Below are positions 7,948-27,481 of a stretch of 64,000 bases of DNA, piece after piece (the stretch's first letter is position 1; each line of letters opens with the position of its first letter). Source of the stretch: Epithemia pelagica (Eukaryota; Protista; Bacillariophyta); contig OX337238.1 in the NCBI GenBank assembly GCA_946965045.2, positions 3,162,001 through 3,226,000 on the forward strand. The letters run 5' to 3'. The notes beneath the pieces are model-generated. The model did no database searches, was not told where the DNA came from, and saw only the letters and a list, made by a program, of their open reading frames with translations. A program made the position numbers and the translations under genes.

Positions 7948-10158
7948 TTATTCGATCCGATTGATGAGCACCGCGGGAGTCGTCGTAACATCTTGATCTT
8001 CCACGCTAATGGCCTGTTGAAGATTGTCCCCAAATTCAAACCCCGTCTGGTCAATCGTAACGGAATATTCTCCGTGTGGCACAGCGTCAAACAAGAATTC
8101 ACCATTCGCATCCGTGGTCGCCATCCAATTGTTATCCTCATTCGTGGAATCGACCAAGGTCACAGAGACACCGCCCAAACCTCCATCCGTGGTTCCATCG
8201 CCCTCGGTTTCGTCCACCAAGACGACGCCTTCCACACGGAATACTGTGCGCATCAATTCCACCGCAAGGTCTGTCACGTCGCCGTCGGTTCCGAGAATGG
8301 TGGCATCTCGAGCCACCACGATATCCAGTTGTTGGTTCACGCCTGCATCCAGGGTAATGAACCGCGAGGTCAACGTGCCGTCGCCCTTGTCGTCCTTGGA
8401 TCGAAATAGGGACAAGGTGTCTCCCACGGGCCGGAGATTTCCGGGCAATCCAGTCAGGACGACAATGTACTTGCTGGGTGGAAGTGGGTCCATGATTTGG
8501 TATTGGCCTTCGGCAAAGGTCGTGGTACCGACCATGTATTGTCCCCCCAAATTGAACAGGTCCACCGTCACTCCGTCAATTCCCTCTTCGCCCGAATCCG
8601 TCAATTGGACCACTTGGCCTTGCAAAGAGGCTGGCACAATCGTCACATCCTCCTGTTCCAGCACTTGTCCCGGTGTCAAAGTGACCGACTTGGTACCTAA
8701 TTTGGCATTACTGCCATCCGTGGCAAAAAACTCGACCAATGAGGTTCCGGGGGGCAAGGCAATGTCAAATTCTCCCGATGTTCCAATCCGACCTTGCCGT
8801 ATGGTAATTCCATCGGCCCACGTGGCCACAGAACGACCCGGGACGGGGTTTTGGTTGGTATCCTGGAGTGTGCCTTGAACGGTACCGGGTTCAAACCAGC
8901 CCACTCGCTCGTGCCGGTGTTCCGTCAAGACAAAGACGCCCGTCGTAATGACCTGTTCCTTGGTCGTGGGGTCGGTTTGCCAGGTCACGGTTGTGTCCCC
9001 CGAGGTCGCCAATTGGTATTGGTCGAGGGTTGCTTGCGAGGCCGCAACATTTAGACTATACCGTTGGTTCACGGGGAATTCGCCCAAATCGGCATAGCCT
9101 TGATTGGCGAGAATCACGGTGGCCTGGATTTCTTGCGTGGGCGTGTCCAGAGCCACCAATTCCACGGTAATCTCTTGGGGAAAGGCTCGATCGTCCGAAT
9201 TGGTACTGCCGTCAAAGACAAAATTGCCATTGGTATCTTCATAGACAAAGACGGTAATGCGCCGCCGTCCCGAATCCACCGGAGGCGGGGGCAAGTGAAA
9301 ACACTCATTTTTGGTAATGCAACATTCGACGGCGGCATGCGTCCAGGTATCCGAGAGACTGGCATCGATGAGGCCACCCGCGGCCTGCAAGGCCGCCACG
9401 ACGGCCAAGAGACCATTGTCGGTTTCACTCGATCCATTCGGTTCTCCGGTTTGCCACAAGAGAGCGGCCGTGTCGTCGTCGGATGCGAGACGACGACCCG
9501 TCGACGAGGTGATCCATCCTTCTTGACACAGCTTGGCAATCAGTTCTGCGTCCGCCGTGCCCGATAGAACGGCTTGCTGACAGGCATGAGCTTGCCAATC
9601 GTAGCGTTTGCGCAGTCCCACGGCAATGGGCGTGGTTTGGTCGCCGGCCAAGAACTTCCACAATTGCAATTGCGACGGCGTGACAATAGGCGCCAAGAGA
9701 CAATGGGGCAAGAATTGGCTCAACCAGGCACTCCATTGTTCATGGGTAAAGCCAGAATCGGAAGGACAGTGATGCTCGGTGGGAATGTGGGACAACCACG
9801 ACACGTGGGGATGCACCGTAGTACTGTCCACATGACAGGGCAGGACGTCGTGATGAATCACACCGCCACAGGGACACTGTTCTTGTGGTTGATGATTTCC
9901 AAAAACAGCAACATCCAACACCCACCAATCCGAACCACATTGGACACGTACACATGTGAGAAACCACTTCCAAACAACAACAACAATCGAATGAACCACT
10001 TTGGGAAAAGCACAACACAAAACAACAACAGCCACATGGAGTGCACTTGCCTCGTGATCGTCGTCCTTGTCGTATTTCTCCGAGCTACTACTACTACTCG
10101 CAGGAACCAGACTGCAGCTGAATAGTAGCAGTACGAGTAGTAACAGAGACGACACCAT
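7948..10158 (-). CDS. Secreted protein with tandem SdrD-B/Cna-B-like (prealbumin-like) beta-sandwich domains
   Basis: Signal peptide MVSSLLLLVLLLFSCSLVPA (ATG 10158, in frame with the 815-aa ORF), Cys-rich N region, GRRLAS, then repeats such as ITVFVYEDTNGNFVFDG, GIDGVTVDLFNLGGQYMVGTTT and GGVSVTLVD...ATTDANGEFLFDAVPHGEYSVT. Possible GC-AG intron at 10050-9877. Confidence 0.7.
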   Translation of the reverse strand: MVSSLLLLVLLLFSCSLVPASSSSSSEKYDKDDDHEASALHVAVVVLCCAFPKVVHSIVVVVWKWFLTCVRVQCGSDWWVLDVAVFGNHQPQEQCPCGGVIHHDVLPCHVDSTTVHPHVSWLSHIPTEHHCPSDSGFTHEQWSAWLSQFLPHCLLAPIVTPSQLQLWKFLAGDQTTPIAVGLRKRYDWQAHACQQAVLSGTADAELIAKLCQEGWITSSTGRRLASDDDTAALLWQTGEPNGSSETDNGLLAVVAALQAAGGLIDASLSDTWTHAAVECCITKNECFHLPPPPVDSGRRRITVFVYEDTNGNFVFDGSTNSDDRAFPQEITVELVALDTPTQEIQATVILANQGYADLGEFPVNQRYSLNVAASQATLDQYQLATSGDTTVTWQTDPTTKEQVITTGVFVLTEHRHERVGWFEPGTVQGTLQDTNQNPVPGRSVATWADGITIRQGRIGTSGEFDIALPPGTSLVEFFATDGSNAKLGTKSVTLTPGQVLEQEDVTIVPASLQGQVVQLTDSGEEGIDGVTVDLFNLGGQYMVGTTTFAEGQYQIMDPLPPSKYIVVLTGLPGNLRPVGDTLSLFRSKDDKGDGTLTSRFITLDAGVNQQLDIVVARDATILGTDGDVTDLAVELMRTVFRVEGVVLVDETEGDGTTDGGLGGVSVTLVDSTNEDNNWMATTDANGEFLFDAVPHGEYSVTIDQTGFEFGDNLQQAISVEDQDVTTTPAVLINRIE

Positions 10159-10249
10159 TCTTCCTCCACCAGTCCTCCTTGGACGACTTGCTGCTGCTCT
10201 GGTCCTCCTCCTTATTCTCTGGTGATGATTGGGATGGTGTAGGAACTGT

Positions 10250-10299
<50 letters not shown>
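10250..10299. repeat. (GTC)n microsatellite
   Basis: About 16 near-perfect GTC units. Confidence 0.9.
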
Positions 10300-10302
<3 letters not shown>

Positions 10303-10584
10303 TCTAGAGGGGGAAACTGCCAACGTACGCGTTGGGTCTCTCTCGCTCTGGTGTTTGGTGGCCCCGCTCCCGTGTGGTGGTGGTGGTTGGCACACCCTGT
10401 TTTTTTTTTAAGAGAGAGTGTTGTGGTTGTTGTCGTATTATTAGGTAGTTGCAAGGATGTGAGAGGATCGTGTTCGCGGTGTGTGTCCATGGTGAAATTT
10501 TTTGGGAGGGACGCCTTTGGTTCGGTTGAGGGGTGTGAACGGAAAGGAGCCGGCGTTGGAGAAGGGTCCCCCGGCGTGCGTCCA

Positions 10585-11630
10585 CAGATTCAGTCAGTCA
10601 CGCGTCGCTTGGTCCCGTATGGATGGTCGCGGTTTCGATCTTCGGTCCGTCTCTCCGTCCGCCGGGGAGACAAAGATCTCTTGCGCCCACGGACATCCCA
10701 TCGAATCCAATCGGTCGGTCCATACGAACAACGAACATACCAAGAACCAAGAACCCAATCAATACCCAATCATGCATCTCATGTACTACTTGGACGACCA
10801 AGGAAATCGAGTCTATACGATCAAGGTAAGAGAAGATATTATATACAGTTGTTGCTGTTGTTGGTTGCTATTGGAGAGAGTCTCCAGAGTGCAGCAGAGA
10901 TGTATCCCGCCGCCTGGAGGAGGAGAAGGCTGGTTTCTCAGTTTCGTTCGGGACATGATCCTTTGTGTGTGTGTGTACTGTTCTCTCGGAAAATGATGGT
11001 TCCTTTCTCTCTCTTTCCGGAATGACTCCAATTCATGGACACCAACGACGCTTCTTTGGCACGGGGGAATCCTTCAAATTCTGTGTGGTGGACCGACCGA
11101 AGGAATCTCCCACGAATGCCAAAGTGACAAAGTGCGCATCCCGCTCGATTTTCGCCCCATGACAAATTCAGTGCCCAACGAGTCGCCTGCAAAAAGCGAT
11201 TGGCAGTTACTTGACCAAATTGCCGCGATCCAAGCCCTTGCAGGAGTAGTAGTGACAACAAGAACAAGAACGAGAGTACTAGAGGCACACTTGGACAGAG
11301 AGACGCAACTGTGAAACAACCACGAAACCAATTGGAACATGACAAACTACCTATTCTATATCAAACAACATGAACATGGATGGATGGATCTTCCATCGAA
11401 AGCCTTGTCTATGCGTTCTTGCAACAAACCCAGTCACAGGAAAAAGCTCTACCAGTTTGGATCCAGAGAGCCAGAACATGCGCGCCAAGGAGGAAGCAAC
11501 ATCAAGTCAGTCCTGGGAACCATGACTGGATGGATTGGACATGATGAATGGCGTTGTTGGATGGAATCGTTGGACCGATCCAATCGAATGGGTGAAGCTC
11601 CGCGCGGTGATATCTCCCCAGTGGCTGGTC
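10585..11630 (+). repeat. Right arm of the inverted duplication carrying the NOP10 pseudogene
   Basis: Reverse-complement match to 6560-7550, diverged with indels. Confidence 0.85.
10772..11255 (+). pseudogene. NOP10: NOP10 pseudogene
   Basis: Exon 1 intact ([20 protein letters not shown] donor at 10826). Acceptor changed from ccgacAG to ccgacCG; 2-nt and 1-nt deletions in exon 2; original TAG changed to CAG. Confidence 0.88.
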
Positions 11631-17517: not shown

Positions 17518-18546
17518 ATGTTCACACTCACTTCTCTTACCGTCGCTCTTTTCTTGTTGTTCGCGTCGCTGCCTTCTTCCAATGGCCTTTTGAGAGGGTC
17601 GTCGTCACCGTCCTCCGCTTGGCCCAAAAGTACGGACACTATGGAACGTCACCTCAATACAATCGAGCTGGCAGAAGGAAGGATGAAGGGATCCTCGTCT
17701 TCCATTGCGAAGGGTTCTCCCCGCAAGCTTGCTGGAACGATGGACAAGAACAAGCGCTGTACTACCGGCGCGATTGTGATTAATGAGTGTGGCAAGAGAT
17801 TAGTTCGAGACAATCGAAGAATATCGTTGTTTATTTTGGAGGACAATTTGGAGTGCAATGTCCAAGAGACTGACTTTGGACTTGATATTTTTGGCTCGGG
17901 TGTCACACTGGATTGCAATGGAAATACAATAACAGGTGTTGTGCCAGATGGTATTTCTTCCTTCACCTTTGATGGAATTCGGATTCGGAATGACAACATT
18001 GTTCTCAAAAACTGCATTCTCACTGGTTTTGATAATGGAATCAAGCTGGGGCAAGAGTTTTCTGCCGTCAGCACTATTTTGTTGCAAAATATTGATTCTC
18101 ACCACAATCGTGTCGACGGTTTGGACCTGGATGCTTTTCGAGGTGTATTGGAAGACATTACAGTCTTGGATTCCACATTCAACGATAACGGAAACACGGG
18201 AGTGCAAGTCAATACCGGTAGCTTCGCGAGGGTTGAAAATCTGGTCGTGTCGGGAGTTCAAGCCAACCGCAATGGTGATTCTGGATTTGAGTTGCATTTC
18301 ATCAAGTCTGGACGGTTGGTGGACGTTGAAGCCAACAACAACGGAAGTGACGTCGATCAATTATTCAGAGATGGCATCAACGTAAGGACTAGGGAAAATG
18401 ACGATACCAAGCTTGTGATTCAAGATTCCAGGGCCTGTGGCAATGGAGATGAAGATATCAGCGACTCTTTCAATGCTGCTACCTTTCATGGAATATCCTG
18501 CACCAACGACGATGGCAAGGGAACTTGTGCCTGCGATTGCCCATAA
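17518..18546 (+). CDS. Secreted right-handed parallel beta-helix (pectin-lyase-like/NosD-like) protein, copy 1
   Basis: Signal peptide ending SNG|LLRG, RHL and RKL motifs, then GVTLDCNGNTITG, DGIRIRNDNIVLKNCILTGFDNGIKL and N-x-x-N-G turn repeats; Cys-rich C terminus CTNDDGKGTCACDCP. Confidence 0.8.
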   Translation: MFTLTSLTVALFLLFASLPSSNGLLRGSSSPSSAWPKSTDTMERHLNTIELAEGRMKGSSSSIAKGSPRKLAGTMDKNKRCTTGAIVINECGKRLVRDNRRISLFILEDNLECNVQETDFGLDIFGSGVTLDCNGNTITGVVPDGISSFTFDGIRIRNDNIVLKNCILTGFDNGIKLGQEFSAVSTILLQNIDSHHNRVDGLDLDAFRGVLEDITVLDSTFNDNGNTGVQVNTGSFARVENLVVSGVQANRNGDSGFELHFIKSGRLVDVEANNNGSDVDQLFRDGINVRTRENDDTKLVIQDSRACGNGDEDISDSFNAATFHGISCTNDDGKGTCACDCP

Positions 18547-18619
18547 CATTTCCTTCGGTAGTAACGATTTTGGGTTGACCGTCTGGGTAAACTAACTACT
18601 CTATTAGCAGACCGATTAT

Positions 18620-18965
18620 GCTTGGTTGCACTGCAACAGGAAGATGAAGACTACTGTTGTAGACGACACATTGTGATTAGAGAACCAGTGGTATAGGGAG
18701 GTAACTAGGAGTATTGGTTTACCTAAAACTCTCTCGAACGCTCCCTCAGTTTGGGATTGAGTTTGGATTGTGAGATTTGCACAGAGCTTGGAGTACAGGT
18801 GGGAACCAGATTATGGCAGACGCACCATCGAAAATCAATCCCAAACTGTAGAAGCGTTCGAGAGAGTCTCAGGTAAAACATAGGTAGCTCCCTCTACCAC
18901 TGGTTCTCTAGTCACGATTCGTCGTCAACAACAGTAGTCTTTTTCTTCCTTTTGCAGCACCATCA
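18620..18965. repeat. Imperfect foldback inverted repeat (~140-bp arms)
   Basis: 18620-18770 (gactactgttg..agaaccagtggta..ctctctcgaacgct..gtttgggattga) is mirrored by 18830-18965, with a spacer of about 60 bp. Confidence 0.8.
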
Positions 18966-19597
18966 AGTAGAGACTTGTCATCATGGGTGGTGGTACCCAC
19001 CGTTACACCAAGCTCTGTGCACCCTTTCATCACAGCGACCTCCGAACAACCTACCTAGAAACCTATTCTTTTTCGTTTTCTGAGTCGCAAGATTCGTGAT
19101 TTTCGTGGTCGCCACGATGTGGTTCCGAATGACGTGCGGAAAAGTTTTGGCTTCCGAATGTGACGTCCAGCCGACCATGATGTGACGCAATCCTGTCCGT
19201 AGATCATTTTTATTGTTTCATTCAGGCATTATTGCGATCGGATCGATCCAATGGCTCCTGGAGGATACCAAGAACCCAAGAACGAGTACAACTACCTGCT
19301 GCTGTTTTAGCACGCTCAGCATGCAGATACTATCTACCATGCCATAGTACGACACCTTCGCACCATGGTTGTGCGCTCGCTCTTTTTCTCCGGAGCATTC
19401 ATCCATTCTCAAAACGACGATTCTGTAGAAAAACCCGGGAACGAGTCTACCAAACATGTCCATTCGAAAACATTTCTGTTTACTACCAACGTAGTTAGTT
19501 AGGTCGGCCACGAAACTGGATGCTCACGAGCCGTCCAGTTCGGTTGTGCTTTTTACAAGAACGAGTGCAAATACTGTGCATATCAATCAAAGGTTGT

Positions 19598-20338
19598 TTA
19601 GTTGGCCGACTTGAGGTATTCCAACATGGTGTTGGCATCACTGACTTCAAAGGGATCCGGTCCCGAGTTTTGGACACGGTCCGGTTCGCAAAACAATTTT
19701 TCAATCGTACCATCCTTCACGACCATGCTGTAGCGCCAGGATCGTTCGCCAAAGCCCCGCTCCGATTCCCAGACACAACTCATGCCCATGCCACGAGTAA
19801 AGTGGGCGGCACCGTCGGGCAACAATTTGGTCTTGGTAAAGCCATTGGCACCAATCGTCTTGTCTTCTTCCAAACCCAAATTCAAGCCCCATTGACGCAT
19901 CACAAAGGCGTCGTTCACTGACAAGCCTAATGAAATCCAACAAACAAACAACAAGAACAATAGACACGAGGCACAAACAAACAAAGAAACAACACGTTAG
20001 TGAGTATTTCATCTTGGCTGCCACGAGACACCGACAAACACAACACACAGTAGACACATACAGTAAATTTCATCAATGCCCGTGGCCTTGATTTCTTCGT
20101 ACAGAGCATCGTATCCAGGCACATGGGTGGAACTGCACGTGGGGGTAAAGGCTCCGGGCAAGCTAAAGACGACGACGCGCTTGCCGGCAAAAATGTCCTT
20201 GCTGGGCACATCCTTCCAATCAAAGGGATTCTCGTCTTCACTTTCAATGCGGACACGAGTGACAAAGGTCATTTCCGGAACGGCATCGCCTTCTTGTTTC
20301 GGCGTCGTCCATTCCGGTTTCAAATCTATCGTTGCCAT
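19598..20338 (-). CDS. Type II (Prx5-like) peroxiredoxin, presequence-less copy, 2 exons (20338-20062, 19926-19598), 201 aa
   Basis: MATIDLKPEW...VFSLPGAFTPTCSSTHVPGY...YC|LSVNDAFVMRQW...DPFEVSDANTMLEYL; 135-bp GT-AG intron; peroxidatic Cys intact. Confidence 0.88.
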
Positions 20339-20730
20339 TGTCGTGCTCTACTAGATGTGGACAGAGTTTGGAATAGAGGTGGGTACCAGATTATGGCAGA
20401 CTACGAGTGCACAGAGCTTGGAGTAAAGGTGGTTACCAGGGCCCACGATGACGTCATGTCGAAAGGAGAAAGAAAGTGGCCACGTCAGATCACTCCCGAA
20501 GCGGCACTATGGACTGAAATGTAGGCATCGAGTCGCACATGACCCCGTGCCAAGGATGTGTACGCACGAAGTTGGTCCGTACGTACGTACCAACCGAAAC
20601 CATTGTCACAAAAAGTCTTGAGAGATTCATCTGTTGCGTGTGAGCCACATCACTCTGTCAGACCAATAGATCCAAACACTGGATCCCATTCCCTTGCAGC
20701 CACTCCTTTTCATTCCACCAATAAAAGACG

Positions 20731-21021
20731 ATGATGTTCAAGACCTTGATTGTTTCCTTGGCTGTCGCCTCCAAGGCGAGTTTGGCCTTTCAGCCTCTGG
20801 CCGCGACTCGTGCGAGATCGGCCTTGGCGTCGGCCGCTGTCGAAACATCGTATTCCATGGACTTGAAACCAGAATGGACGACGCCGAAGCAAGAAGGCGA
20901 TGCCGTTCCGGAAATGACATTTGTCACTCGTGTCCGTATCGAAAGTGAAGATGAAAACCCCTTTGATTGGAAGGATGTGCCCAGCAAGGACATTTTTGCC
21001 GGCAAGCGCGTCGTGGTCTTT
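20731..21021 (+). pseudogene. 5'-only peroxiredoxin copy (presequence plus N terminus), truncated before the active site
   Basis: Nearly identical to 25285-25575 and preceded by the same promoter (20370-20730). Ends RVVVF* and switches abruptly to beta-helix sequence. Confidence 0.85.
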
Positions 21022-21450
21022 TGAATCTTTTCAAGGTATATTGTCAGACATGACAGTCTTCGATTCAAAATTCAACCATGACGAAGATAATGGAGTTGAA
21101 CTAGATGAGGCTGTTGCGAAGGTTGAAAAGCTGGTTGTGTCTGGAGTTGAAGCATACAGGAAGGTGATTCTGGATTCGTTTTGAGTTTCATTATGACGCA
21201 CGTTTGGTTGGTGTCGAAGCCATCAACAATGGAAGGGATGTTGATCAAAATATAAGACGCGACATTAGGATCAGGCATTTTGGGAAAACCAACACCAATC
21301 TTGTGATTCAAGGCTCGAGGGCATTTGGCAATGGAGAAGAAAGCAATGGACAAGATATCAAGCATCCATTCTATAGTGCTACCTTCCAAAGCAATTTCAG
21401 GCGCAAACGACAATGGCAAGGGAATTTTTGCCTGCGATTGTTCCTAGCCT
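21022..21450 (+). pseudogene. 3' half of a beta-helix gene, frameshifted
   Basis: ESFQGILSDMTVFDSKFN...VVSGVEA and VGVEAINNG...NLVIQGSRAFGNG lie in different frames; ends gcctgcgattgttcctag like the family C terminus. Confidence 0.82.
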
Positions 21451-21953
21451 TTGATTGTGCTGCAAACGCAAGAAAACGAACATGGTTGTAGACGACGAAT
21501 CGACGAGAAGAACTGTCATCCTGCTGGTTTGGGACGGTCTATAGTTGGACACTTTGACCATGAATGTGGCTTCTTGTGTCGGACACTCTGCGGAAACACG
21601 GCAGATCAGAGAAAACCCCTGTCGTACGGTTCAGCAAACATCAAACTCATTCGAAAGTGCATGGGTTAGAGCAAATTCCTCGCAAACACAATATCAAAGC
21701 ATTGTTAGAGCTCCATATTCCTTCATGAAGCAAAACGTTGACAAGGCGGATATTGAAGATTCATGGTCCTGATCTGCAGTGTCTTTGCCTTTTTGCCTCA
21801 AGCAATGAAAGTGGTTGAATGCTATGCGAGTCTGTAGACGAGGCGTGCCACAAGAAAATAAACTTGATCAAGACGAAACACTACGTGACAGCCGCCAGAA
21901 GTACCTGACGGGGTTTTCTAATATTACTACTACCATGGAGGCATGGTAGGAAG

Positions 21954-23496
21954 ATGCCTCCCGACTACCGCCCCCTCGTCGTCCCTCACAAACTCGGACT
22001 TTGGTTTCTACGACCACGATCCAAACGCGACTCAGTCGGCAGACGCACAACAAGAAACCTCCACGTCGTTGCAAGTTGCAAGTTGCACACCAAGGCTTTT
22101 TACGCATGCAGTGGTGTCGTCTACATCGTCTTGTCTGCGTTTGTTGTCGGCTGTTTGTTTCTCTCGCTCTGTGGATATACGAGAGACCTCAAACGTTGGC
22201 TGTGTTTGGACAAATTGTGCTACATCTTCACCTTCACCACACCACCAACCATCACCATGAGCCTGTTTCCCGATGACGTGACGGATTTCTTGACCATTGT
22301 CGGGCTTGTGGTGCACCAATTCATACCGGCCCGACGCATCCAAAGCATCGGCAACACTGCGGATGCCAACGCGCCGCAGCCACACTGCTATTTGCTTCAT
22401 TCCAAACATGACGATACCAATAACAACAACAAACGAGGTACAACACGATGTAGACTTTCTACGCGAGCGTTTGCAGGATCGTCAACCGTTTGAGACGCAT
22501 CGGTTGCGGTCCCTCTATATGTCGCTCTTGTTGGGTTTGCAAGAGACGGAAGCAATGGATCTCAAACGCATGATGGAGGCATCCATGGCCACCATTGACA
22601 CCAACAATGATGGCATGATTGACGCGCTGGAAATGGAACACTTGCATCTGCCTCGTGAAACGGAAGAATTCTTGTTTGATGACGTTGTGGACTGTACTAC
22701 GACTGCGACCAACGAACCACAACAACAACAACAACAAGACGAAGAAGAAGACTGTGTGACGGCCGCCAATGTCGTGGACTTTCTCAACCTGTTTTATGGA
22801 GGTACCAAGCTCGTCAGAGACGACTTGGCCCTGCTAATTGCGCAAGCGGGCGGCACCGATGCTTGTTTGACTCGATGGGGATTCGAACAGGCCTTTGGCG
22901 TGGCAGAACCGTCGGTGGCGGCTGGAGTTCGTGTAGTGGATGCCTCGTTGTGTGATGGTGGAGCCGTGCCATTGGTTGCCGTGCTGACCATGTTGGTGTC
23001 ACTCGTCGTCATCGTGTTATTGGTTGGATTGCCTCTTTTTATTCTCCACTATTACTCACAAAGTGAACACCTATCTGGTTGGAAACGATGCTTCTTGAGC
23101 AAAGAATGTCGGAAGAACGACACCAGGAGGTTGTCGTATAGGCAACATCTACCGTACGTTGGGTTCTGTACATATGCGACTACTGCACCGGTCCGATTGC
23201 GAGCGAACGCGGTTTGGAGTGTGGATACGTTAATTCAGTCGCACTCGCGCGCCAGAAAAAAGTCATTCTCGTACATTGCGACTGAAACATTTTTGCTACG
23301 GATCCAAATGCTACGGGCTGAAAGTTGCACCAGGAGTAAACATTGTTACGCAGGTTTCCTTTCCGGTCTCCCTCTTCTCATAAAATCGCAAACACGACAA
23401 GTTCGAAACCATTCGGCAAACATGTGCACATTCGAGTCCCTTTCCGTAGTTCTTTTCTTCTTGTTGTTGTCGTTGCCTTCTTCGAATGGCCTTTAA
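21954..23496 (+). pseudogene. EF-hand membrane protein family, copy 2 (apparent +1 frameshift near 22430, no own stop)
   Basis: Canonical EF-hand loop DTNNDGMIDALE and a C-terminal TM segment. The upstream PHCYLLHSK block (homologous to copy 3 TCYLLESK) is in another frame, with the shift inside aacaacaacaaacgag. Could be an assembly indel. Confidence 0.6.
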
Positions 23497-24471
23497 CGAG
23501 GGTCCTCGTCATCATTCTCCGCCATGCCAAAAAGTTTTGAAATAAGGGCGCGTCATTTGAGCACAGAAGAGTTAACCGAAAGAAGCATGAAGGGCGCCTC
23601 GTCCTCCATTTCCAAGGCTGTTCCCCGCAAGCTTTTTGGTATGATAGACAAGAACGAGCGCTGTACTACCGACGCGATTGTGATTACTGAGTGTGAGACT
23701 GCATTGGAAGCTGACAATTCGTTGTATATTTTGGAGGACGATTTGGTGTGCAATGTCGAAGATGCAGGCCTTGGACTTGATATAACTGGCACAGGTATCA
23801 CACTGGATTGCAATGGAAAAGCACTTACTGGTTTTGTGCCAGCCGATTTCAGGTTTTCTTTCTTTGACGGAATTCGGATTCGTAATGATAACATTGTTAT
23901 CAGAAACTGCGAAATCACCGGATTTGATGATGGAATCAAGGTGGGGCAAGACAATGCTAAAGTCAGCAATATCTTGCTGCAAAATATTGATTCTCACCAC
24001 AATCGTTTCGACGGTCTGGAAGTAGAAAGTTTTCGTGGAGTATTCTCGGACATCACAGTCTTCGATTCAAAATTCAACGACAACAGGGAGAATGGATTTA
24101 AAGTAAACAGGGAAATTAGGAGGGTTGCAAATTTGGTTATGTCTGGAGTTGAAGCAAACAGGAATGGTCATTCTGGATTTGTTTTGGGGGGTTTCATTGA
24201 GACTGGACGTTTGGTTGGTGTCGAAGCCAACAACAATGGAAGCGCTGATGTCGCTGAAACTCCCGGAAAAAGAACTGGCATTACAATTGAGGGGGTTGAG
24301 GGGATGGAAGATGGTGATACGAATTTTGTGATCCAAGATTCCAGGGCATGTGGCAATGGAGATGAAAGTAATGACCTGGATATTAGGGATCCTTTCAATG
24401 CTGCTACCTTTCAGGCAATGTCATGCACAAACGACGATGGCAAGGGAATTTGTGCCTGCGATTGTTCATAG
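23422..24471 (+). CDS. Beta-helix protein copy 2, with an in-frame TAA at 23494-23496 after the signal peptide
   Basis: MCTFESLSVVLFFLLLSLPSSNGL*RGSSSS where paralogs read NGLLRG. The rest (ATG 23524, 315 aa) is intact and in the same frame. Confidence 0.75.
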
Positions 24472-24758
24472 CCTTTACTACGGTAGTATCGATTTGGGGT
24501 TGACCGTCTGGGTAAACTAATCACTTTAGTAGCAGCCCGCTTATGCTTGATTGTGCTGCAACAGGAAAATAAAAACCACTGTTGTCGACGGCACATCGTG
24601 ATTCGAGAACCAGTGGTATAGGGAGGTAACTATTGTTGTAAGACTCTCTTGAACGCTTCCACAGTTTGGGATTGAGTTTGGATTTTGAGATTTGCACAGA
24701 GCTTGGAGTTGAGGTGGGAACCAGATTATGGCGGAGTTCGGAGATCTGTGATGACAAA

Positions 24759-25113
24759 GTGCACAGAGCCTGGAGTAAAGGTGGGTACCATGGCCCGTGG
24801 TGACGTCATGTCGAAAGGAGAAAGAAAGTGGCCACGTCAGATCACTCCCGAAACGACACTATGGACTGAACTGTAGGAATCGAGTCGCACATGACCCCGT
24901 GCCAATCATGAGAAGGAGGATGTAATGGAGGTGGGTACCAGATTATGGCAGACTACGAGTGCACAGAGCTTGGAGTAAAGGTGCCCACGATGACGTCATG
25001 TAGAAAGGAGAAAGAAAGTGGCCACGTCAGATCACTCCCGAAGCGGCACTATGGACTGAAATGTAGGCATCGAGTCGCACATGACCCCGTGCCAATCACG
25101 AGAAGGAGGATGT
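24759..25113 (+). promoter_or_regulatory. Duplicated peroxiredoxin promoter module with bZIP-type sites
   Basis: Two copies about 190 bp apart, each with TGACGTCA (24801, 24991) and CCACGTCA (24832, 25022); a third copy at 20449/20480. Confidence 0.55.
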
Positions 25114-25284
25114 GTACGCACGAAGTTGGTCCGTACGTACGTACCAACCAAAACCATTGTCACAAAAAGTCTTGAGAGATTCATCTGTTGCGTGTGAGCC
25201 ACATCACTCTGTCAGACCAATAGATCCAAACACTGGATCCCATTCCCTTGCAGCCACTCCTTTTCATTCCACCAATAGAAGACG

Positions 25285-26142
25285 ATGATGTTCAAGACCT
25301 TGATTGTTTCCTTGGCTGTTGCCTCCAAGTCGAGTTTTGCCTTTCAGCCTTTGACTGCCGTTCGTGCGAGTTCGGCCTTGGCGTCGGCCGCCGTCGAAAA
25401 ATCGTATTCCATGGACTTGAAACCAGAATGGACGACGCCGAAGCAAGAAGGCGATGCCGTTCCGGAAATGACCTTTGTCACTCGTGTCCGTATCGAAAGT
25501 GAAGATGAAAACCCCTTTGATTGGAAGGATGTGCCCAGCAAGGACATTTTTGCCGGCAAGCGCGTCGTCGTCTTTGGCTTGCCCGGAGCCTTTACCCCCA
25601 CGTGCAGTTCCACCCATGTGCCTGGATACGATGCTCTGTACGAAGAAATCAAGGCCACGGGCATTGATGAAATTTACTGTATGTGTCTACTGTGTGTTGT
25701 GTTTGTCGGTGTCTCGTGGCAGCCAAGATGAAATACTCACTAACGTGTTGTTTCTTTGTTTGTTTGTGCCTCGTGTTTATTGTTCTTGTTGTTTGTTTGT
25801 TGGATTTCATTAGGCTTGTCGGTGAACGACGCCTTTGTGATGCGTCAATGGGGCTTGAAATTGGGTTTGGAAGAAGACAAGACGATTGGTGCCAATGGCT
25901 TTACCAAGACCAAATTGTTGCCGGACGGTGCCGCCCACTTTACGCGTGGCATGGGCATGAGTTGTGTCTGGGAATCGGAGCGGGGCTTTGGCGAACGATC
26001 CTGGCGCTACAGCATGGTCGTGAAGGATGGTACGATTGAAAAATTGTTTTGCGAACCGGACCGTGTCCAAAACTCGGGACCTGATCCCTTTGAAGTCAGT
26101 GATGCCAACACCATGTTGGAATACCTCAAGTCGGCCAACTAA
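25285..26142 (+). CDS. Type II (Prx5-like) peroxiredoxin with bipartite plastid-targeting presequence, 2 exons (25285-25678, 25814-26142), 240 aa
   Basis: Signal peptide plus ASAFAP-like SFA|FQP and an Ala/Ser-rich transit peptide; FGLPGAFTPTCSS active site; GT-AG intron 25679-25813 joins YC|LSVNDAF in frame. Confidence 0.92.
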
Positions 26143-26764
26143 ACAACTTTTGATTGACATACACAGTATTTGCACTCGTTCTTGTAAAAAGCACAACCGA
26201 ACTGGATGGCTCGTGAGTATCCAGTTTCGTGGCCGACCTAACTAAATACGTTGGTAGTAAATAGAAATGTTTTCGAATGGGCATGTTTGGTAGACTCGTT
26301 CCCGGGTTTTTCTACAGAATCGTCGTTTTGAGAATGGATGAATGCTCCGGAGAAAAAGAGCGAGCGCACAACCATGGTGCGAAGGTGTCGTAATATGGCA
26401 TGGTAGATAGTATTTGCACGCTGAACGTGCTAAAACAGCAGCAGGTAGTTGTACTCGTTCTTGGGTTCTTGGTATCCTCCAGGAGCCATTGGATCGATCC
26501 GATCGCAATAATGCCTGAATGAAACAATAAAAATGATCTACGGACAGGATTGCGTCACAGCATGGTCGGCTGGACGTCACATTCGGAAGCCAAAACTTTT
26601 CCGCACGTCATTCGGAACCACATCGTGGCGACCACGAAAATCCGACTCAGAAAACGAAAAAGAGTAGGTTTCTAGGTAGCAGAGCACGACAATGGCAACG
26701 ATAGAAACACCAGCAAGTAACACTCGTTTCTGCCCGTGGCGAGCACACGCCGACGGCCGTCACC

Positions 26765-27055
26765 AAATTGACAAAGAGGACAGTCACAATGCCAACGAAT
26801 TGGCTCGTCATACTTGTGGTGGTTTTGTTGTTGGCAAGCCAAACGTCGCTGTGTGTGTTTGTCGACAAACTGTTCGATCTGCGGCCAACAACCAAAGCGG
26901 CAGCGAGAACAATGAGAGCGAGTTGCGTGTTCGACCTTATCTTGACGACGTGGATCTCTCTTCCCCGTAGGGAAGACTGCTATTTTCTTAGAACGCACAG
27001 TCATCGGTGGTCGCCTTTACGGTTCCGAATGACGTTCCTCTCTGCTTCCGAATGT
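26765..27055 (+). repeat. Diverged direct duplication, partner ~30455-30790
   Basis: Shared blocks aaagaggacagtcacaatg, gaacgcac.gtca and ggttccga..tgacgttc..tgcttccgaa occur in the same order at both sites. Confidence 0.55.
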
Positions 27056-27481
27056 GGTGTCTTGGAGCGACAATGGTCCGTACACCAGACACAACGCCAT
27101 GTTGTTCCGTAGTAATATAGAACCGACATGTTGTTCTCACCACACCACCTCTCGTCATGGACAATGCCTCTATGTGACGAGTCCAGCACTGATTGCTTCT
27201 ATAGTTGTAAGTAGTGCTACATCATACTATTCGAAACCTGTCCATCGCGTTTAGTGCTGGCCGCTGTCACGCAGTGCTTCGACTCCTCGACCAAGGTTTC
27301 TTGCCGTGTGCGTGTCGTCAGTCTTGGAGCAAGTGGTTCCCGTCATCAAAGCCGAAATCAAATTGAAAGAATAGTACTCACATTACACCAGTGGAATGTG
27401 TTCCACTTTCTCGATCATGAGGCTGCTAATAGAGTAGTTTACCCATGTTTGCAATCCAAACTCTTTATTCCAGCTTAGAGG

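Follow-up and report, generated by a model that had tools for sequence, protein, structure and literature searches.

The 64,000-nt stretch of Epithemia pelagica DNA studied here (contig OX337238.1, positions 3,162,001 to 3,226,000 of the forward strand; hereafter the window) carries a cluster of peroxiredoxin genes that exists, on this contig and on a second one, as two inversion isomers. Both exons of the gene match the Pfam family Redoxin (PF08534) with 41.7 and 28.7 bits against a curated cut-off of 26.6 (E = 1e-10 and 1e-6). Among named relatives, the best are peroxiredoxins of diatoms with 55-77% identity, which is consistent with the diatom origin proposed in an earlier note on this DNA. 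The Redoxin match and the PGAFTPTC motif are shared with type II (Prx5-like) peroxiredoxins; the particularity of this pair of paralogues is that its members are unlike only at the N-terminus, where one carries a 43-residue presequence and the other the residues MATI. The plus-strand gene encodes 240 aa and opens with the presequence MMFKTLIVSLAVASKSSFAFQ..., which we take, from what is known of the bipartite presequences of diatoms, to resemble a signal peptide followed by F. The minus-strand gene is an intact spliced open reading frame (ORF) of 201 aa that begins MATIDLKPEW... and has no presequence. Between the two there are 12 synonymous changes and 2 that are non-synonymous; both genes are therefore under purifying selection.

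The body of the presequence gene and its 3' flank (25411-26679, plus strand), here called segment B, recur as an inverted copy at 19051-20329 on the minus strand, with 96.9% identity over 1279 alignment columns; the alignment contains a single 10-nt indel, at 19088, and 30 mismatches. Segment B begins at the codon for D, the first of the mature protein, takes in a 135-nt intron and exon 2, and closes with some 550 nt of 3' flank that end in ...tttctaggtag. A block of 25 nt, A (AGAGCACGACAATGGCAACGATAGA), is found without a mismatch at 26681-26705 (plus) and 20349-20325 (minus). In the minus-strand gene, hereafter the A-led copy, this block forms the 5' leader, the ATG (20338-20336) and the codons M-A-T-I. 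Four of five bases are shared where the blocks meet, ATAGA (20329-20325 and 26701-26705) standing against ATGGA (25411-25415). The letters 'tag' precede A at both loci (tagT-A versus tagC-A), and 'tag' also closes B at both. The copy amounts to exactly one unit of A (25 nt) plus B, 1290 nt in all, with the ATAGA/ATGGA microhomology at the junction that closes it.

The earlier note had described this inverted copy at 19051-20354, a permuted order (B-A on the plus strand, A-B on the minus strand), a microhomology AT(A/G)GA at the join and 'tag' at both ends. The alignment bears out the copy, and the order, the microhomology and the 'tag' are all found in the window contig; the 5' limit alone needs adjusting, since A itself begins at 20349 and 20354 takes in the preceding 'ctagt'. 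No further match to A with up to 3 mismatches occurs in the 64-kb window, where none is expected by chance. With two exact copies in the window and two contexts in read contigs, A is not a dispersed repeat. We also considered Helitron-like ends, given a CTAG near the 3' end, and rejected them for lack of a matching 5' end.

A homology search returned a 95%-identical ORF on a second contig, L002, of the same ENA assembly, in which the window's own contig is ctg1201l. L002 is collinear with the flanks of the window (the spacer beside A is 99.5% identical, the side of the beta-helix gene X1 about 94%), which identifies it as either the other haplotype or a homeolog of very recent origin. Its plus strand begins with a counterpart of the beta-helix gene X3 and the spacer, followed by the reverse complement of A (8305-8329), a G, the reverse complement of B (8331-9599) and the reverse complement of A again (9595-9619). 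The order then continues with ACTAG, R repeat units and a 5' region with the presequence, a full-length B (10127-11388), 'gttgttcgg...' (the R1b unit) and an inverted counterpart of X1. On L002, A thus stands on either side of the A-led copy (tagt-A-B-tagc-A-spacer), and the end of the presequence gene reads ...ctaggtag/gttgttcgg, that is, it passes into R1b without A; the same R1b-like flank adjoins the inverted copy in the window. The reverse complement of B, a 527-nt spacer of R units and 5' region, and B adjoin one another there, and in the window the same spacer faces a truncated third copy. In this head-to-head peroxiredoxin gene pair, one member has lost the presequence and taken its start codon from the 25-nt block. 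All four genes, of both types and on both contigs, are intact, and synonymous changes among them greatly exceed non-synonymous ones.

The peroxiredoxin ORF clusters comprise only five ORFs, all from these two contigs in the whole collection, and so yielded no third haplotype or strain. A look-up of the A-led ORF for an independent assembly matched only the window's own contig. The nearest Joint Genome Institute (JGI) proteins are only 77% identical, and block A had no match in the JGI metagenome contigs.

Inverting window positions 20280-25460 in silico makes the window collinear with L002 in a single alignment of 6767 nt, with a 4.55-kb indel as the sole remainder. In the alignment of the four full-length copies, ten markers (the 10-nt indel and columns 81, 84, 96, 99, 102, 166, 1016, 1027 and 1276) sort the copies according to outer flank, pairing the A-led copy of the window with the presequence gene of L002 and the presequence gene of the window with the A-led copy of L002. 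Grouping by inner flanks is seen only at columns 3 and 6, in or next to the junction overlap, and at column 423. By this distribution the exchange point falls within B, between columns 6 and 81. Between the contigs there has been an inversion through recombination between 1.27-kb inverted repeats that are 97% identical. Its effect is to turn the pair A-B-cA and presequence-B-R1b into A-B-R1b and presequence-B-cA; the swap of 3' flanks is the 'permutation' of the window. The flip-flop isomers of the plastid inverted repeat are likewise inversions by homologous recombination between inverted repeats (non-allelic homologous recombination). As in plastids, there are two isomers, the interval between the repeats is flipped and flanking markers are exchanged inside the repeat; the difference is that the repeats here are functional paralogous genes, so that the flip swaps their 3' flanks and, in the window, reverses 5.1 kb with two other genes.

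The remaining indel, of 4554 nt (window 20857-25410 versus L002 10127), holds the truncated peroxiredoxin, a beta-helix gene fragment, the membrane-protein gene of the second cassette (with a weak EF-hand match) and the beta-helix gene X2. Direct repeats of 94% identity (20353-21021 and 24688-25575), which carry the promoter, the presequence and 165 nt from the start of B, lie on either side of the indel and suggest that it arose by unequal exchange.

Together the copies form a gene-conversion mosaic. Within the window pair, divergence is uneven along B: the first ~100 nt hold 8 synonymous differences, the remaining coding sequence and the intron differ by ~1% and the 3' flank by ~3%, and A differs at 0 of 25 nt. 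The intron of the L002 presequence gene (10402-10519) is 118 nt long and unrelated in sequence to that of the other three copies (135 nt), with which it aligns no better than shuffled sequence does, and 8 synonymous differences lie just upstream of it. This region seems to be a leftover of an old paralogue that conversion has spared. The presequence gene of the window has 15 private differences, and the truncated copy matches the spacer-side copy at columns 15, 33 and 81-102. Given the uneven divergence, the unrelated intron and the private differences, the copies have converted one another repeatedly, and at least part of one copy would be an old paralogue.

The junctions were examined in four sequencing runs (X1 to X4, not to be confused with the beta-helix genes), whose k-mer-built contigs of up to 1.8 kb were aligned to window positions 18400-21700 (3301 letters). 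Contigs from X1 and X2, at a depth of ~57 (flanks 43-72), cover 20267-20405 without differences and so span the passages from B to A and from A to R. The junction 19050/19051 is spanned by a contig of 1046 nt and 21021/21022 by one of 1756 nt. The local junction sequences are thereby confirmed; their linkage on one molecule is not, as the contigs break inside B, a repeat of 1.27 kb. The A/B junction was found in X1 to X3, which are runs of unknown kind, and in none of the runs labelled as RNA; X3 covers the intron at high depth and was therefore not counted as RNA. Run X4, a marine metatranscriptome of 2016, contains a spliced peroxiredoxin contig of 545 nt that is 95-99% identical to 19583-20259 and mixes the variants by which the copies can be told apart; in it the intron is removed exactly at 19926-20060. 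The species or a close relative is thus present at sea and expresses this gene.

The cluster lies among repeated cassettes (Table 1), each of which codes in turn for a membrane protein (EF-hand match weak and below threshold), a beta-helix-like protein and a peroxiredoxin. The truncated copy with its promoter and presequence (20353-21021, plus) stands head-to-head to the inverted copy, and the segment 20353-20856 is orthologous to L002 9623-10126 with 97.4% identity. The R units at 20400-20560 and 24760-25100 (~190 nt, in tandem at the presequence gene, locus 2) carry TGACGTCA, a palindrome like the cAMP response element (CRE), and CCACGTCA. The 527-nt spacer that separates the head-to-head copies is likely, judging from its layout, to be a shared bidirectional promoter, which the repeat units with TGACGTCA and CCACGTCA may form.

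Table 1. The peroxiredoxin cluster and its surroundings; positions are those of the window
Feature	Position	Strand	Remarks
R1b-like unit, adjoining the 3' end of the inverted copy	18977..19047	-	followed by the palindrome in the tail of X1
Block B of the A-led copy	19051..20324	-	intron of 135 nt (20060-19926), stop codon 19600-19598, 3' flank of ~550 nt
Block A, 5' of the inverted copy	20325..20349	-	exact; last 5 nt (ATAGA) in the junction overlap
'tagt' before A	20350..20353	-	counterpart at locus 2 is 'tagc', 26677-26680
R repeat units (motifs TGACGTCA, CCACGTCA), peroxiredoxin 5' region and presequence (ATG 20731)	20353..20856	+	
Truncated third copy, first 165 nt of B	20857..21021	+	joined at 21021/21022 to beta-helix gene fragment 21028-21502
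R units (tandem, ~190 nt) and 5' region with presequence (ATG 25285) of the full-length gene	24688..25410	+	
Block B of the presequence gene (240 aa)	25411..26679	+	exon 1 to 25678, intron 25679-25813, exon 2 25814-26142, then 3' flank
Block A, 3' of B after c at 26680	26681..26705	+	runs on into the unique 775-nt spacer
Beta-helix gene X3, convergent, beyond the 775-nt spacer	28828-27482	-	

On the far side of the inverted copy, the 3' tail of the beta-helix gene X1 (18631-18957) forms a palindrome of 327 nt made of the tail, a 50-nt loop and the inverted tail, after which comes an inverted R1b unit (to 19047). Read on the minus strand, A, B, R1b and the tail each run forward but follow one another in reverse order relative to the second cassette; this reversed order is an older series of backward jumps, at 80-83% identity. 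On the other side, the unique spacer between A and X3 (775 nt, 26706-27481) is 99.5% identical between the contigs against 94-97% for its surroundings, and its ORFs have no Pfam match. We rejected as unsupported the idea that A is the native 5' end of a divergent gene in this spacer: the ORF at 26692-26970 has no Pfam match, and 3 of the 4 spacer differences between the contigs fall in it and alter the protein.

How did A come to stand on opposite sides of B? Our preferred history, to which we give roughly an even chance, is a primary inverted duplication by fold-back or template switch, followed by the flip; both this origin and the identity of the ancestral isomer are inferred from the arrangement of the sequences. 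The starting state would be the order of the sister contig, with the A-led copy head-to-head to the presequence gene at a distance of 527 nt. A replicating or broken 3' end in ...ATAGA would have moved, by fold-back or by a strand switch, onto the ...ATGGA close by, where the mature coding sequence starts. It would then have copied B, returned through the 3-nt 'TAG' and copied A again, leaving a direct repeat of 25-29 nt (tagT-A ... tagC-A). Later, reciprocal recombination between the inverted copies of B would have flipped the interval in the haplotype of the window and swapped the 3' flanks. After the flip, A would adjoin the presequence gene on its 3' side and the other copy on its 5' side, giving an apparent circular permutation.

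Taken as the starting point, L002 offers the 527-nt spacer, an inverted microhomology of four bases in five (ATAGA/ATGGA), the 3-nt TAG at the second junction and a duplication of 25-29 nt at the site of departure. Published fold-back duplications have spacers of at least 766 bp and microhomologies of 2-8 bp (PMC3907307; PMC7467729), and the spacer and microhomology seen here fit the fold-back or template-switch pattern. The likeness to inverted duplications formed by fold-back or by fork stalling and template switching/microhomology-mediated break-induced replication (FoSTeS/MMBIR; Hermetz et al. 2014, PMC3907307; in yeast, PMC7467729) lies in an inverted copy beside its source, a short unduplicated spacer, an inverted microhomology between the spacer's end and the point where the segment begins (here TCTAT versus TCCAT), and a 3-nt microhomology at the second junction. 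The present event differs in being interstitial and only 1.27 kb long, with both junctions local and the 25-29-nt duplication at the return point, whereas the human cases are terminal and of megabase scale. An event count on the site patterns makes the fold-back-first history somewhat shorter, so that parsimony mildly favours the L002 order as ancestral. Under this history the states of the truncated copy (columns 15, 33 and 81-102) need no extra steps, the combinations seen in the window genes fit a crossover between columns 6 and 15, and the truncated copy would share the spacer-side states because the neighbouring gene served as template for the A-led copy.

Several observations weigh against this history. 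The copies are a patchwork (the 118-nt intron, five clustered synonymous differences at columns 81-102, the 15 private differences) that calls for several conversions under every history. At columns 15 and 33 the A-led copies have G and A, unlike the truncated copy, and a flanking duplication of 25-29 nt is long for a simple insertion. The read contigs, at most 1.8 kb long, break inside B and so do not cross the repeat. With two contigs and no outgroup, the window order could equally be ancestral, in which case the permutation would be primary. The earlier note held that the direction of the event cannot be fixed, and we concur, as every scenario takes several conversions, whether one looks at site patterns, at the truncated copy or at the introns.

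Duplication through extrachromosomal circular DNA (eccDNA) underlies colour sidedness at KIT in cattle. Applied to the present locus, a circle of 1290 bp consisting of B, c and A would have been excised from the presequence gene, closed on ATAGA/ATGGA, opened at 'tag' and inserted in inverted orientation some 5 kb away, L002 being derived by a later flip and deletion. We regard this as a doubtful, if serious, possibility. The length of the copy, exactly one unit, and the microhomology where the circle would have closed recall described eccDNA duplications with B-A/A-B order (Chicote et al. 2020, PMC7450558; Takahashi and Innan 2020, PMC7188851); 'tag' stands at either end of the copy, and the A-led copies share their intron with the presequence gene of the window. 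Block-order reversal serves in that literature as the signature of a circular intermediate (PMC7450558, PMC7188851), and the earlier note had taken the A-B/B-A order as diagnostic of one. The order is indeed present in the window, but it loses its diagnostic value here because the inverted copies have exchanged sequence with each other, which provides a recombination route to the permutation, and because L002 has A on both sides of the A-led copy. The insertion would also, by coincidence, have landed head-to-head beside the promoter of another peroxiredoxin copy, and the count requires more conversions, for example at columns 81-166 of the A-led copy and in the truncated copy. Neither a circle nor a haplotype with the donor alone was seen among the two contigs that carry the gene in the whole collection. 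The eccDNA-mediated duplication proposed in the earlier note is thus possible if the window order is ancestral, and nothing requires a circle. In its fullest form, which we consider unlikely, the window order is primary and a reintegrated 1.3-kb circle of gene body and 25 nt of 3' flank brought along a block that happened to supply an ATG; this would have turned a presequence-bearing, probably plastid-targeted enzyme into one without presequence, kept by selection in both haplotypes.

It is improbable, in our estimation, that one contig was misjoined inside the 1.27-kb inverted repeat and that a single arrangement is the true one. In favour of such an artefact, the four local junction sequences are common to both arrangements, and the four copies do not differ from one another at columns 34-80, so that the k-mer contigs are blind to isomers. 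Both contigs are long, however (205 and 281 kb), the whole structures, of 3.1 and 7.7 kb, lie within the ordinary reach of long reads, and the contigs are further set apart by the 4.55-kb indel and by numerous substitutions, which give a consistent phasing of the copies. Still less probable is a tandem B-A-B-A duplication on ATAGA/ATGGA from which a junction-spanning unit was moved or inverted before the array returned to a single copy: its junction would be identical in sequence to that of a circle and the cluster is rich in tandem and unequal exchange (the 4554-nt indel with its direct repeats, the repeated cassette), yet this history takes three steps or more, one of which must place a breakpoint exactly at 'tag', and the direct order B-A-B is on neither contig.

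With its inversion isomers, gene conversion and unequal exchange, the cluster is a new example of known processes. It carries a caution: an A-B/B-A order alone is no footprint of a circle where the copies are recombining inverted repeats, and here it took the second haplotype to reveal this. The locus, with its two isomers, its conversion mosaic and its 4.55-kb indel, is a compact natural system for repeat-mediated inversion in diatoms. Finally, it illustrates how one small rearrangement can strip a targeting presequence from a gene and supply a new start codon, both versions being intact on both haplotypes.

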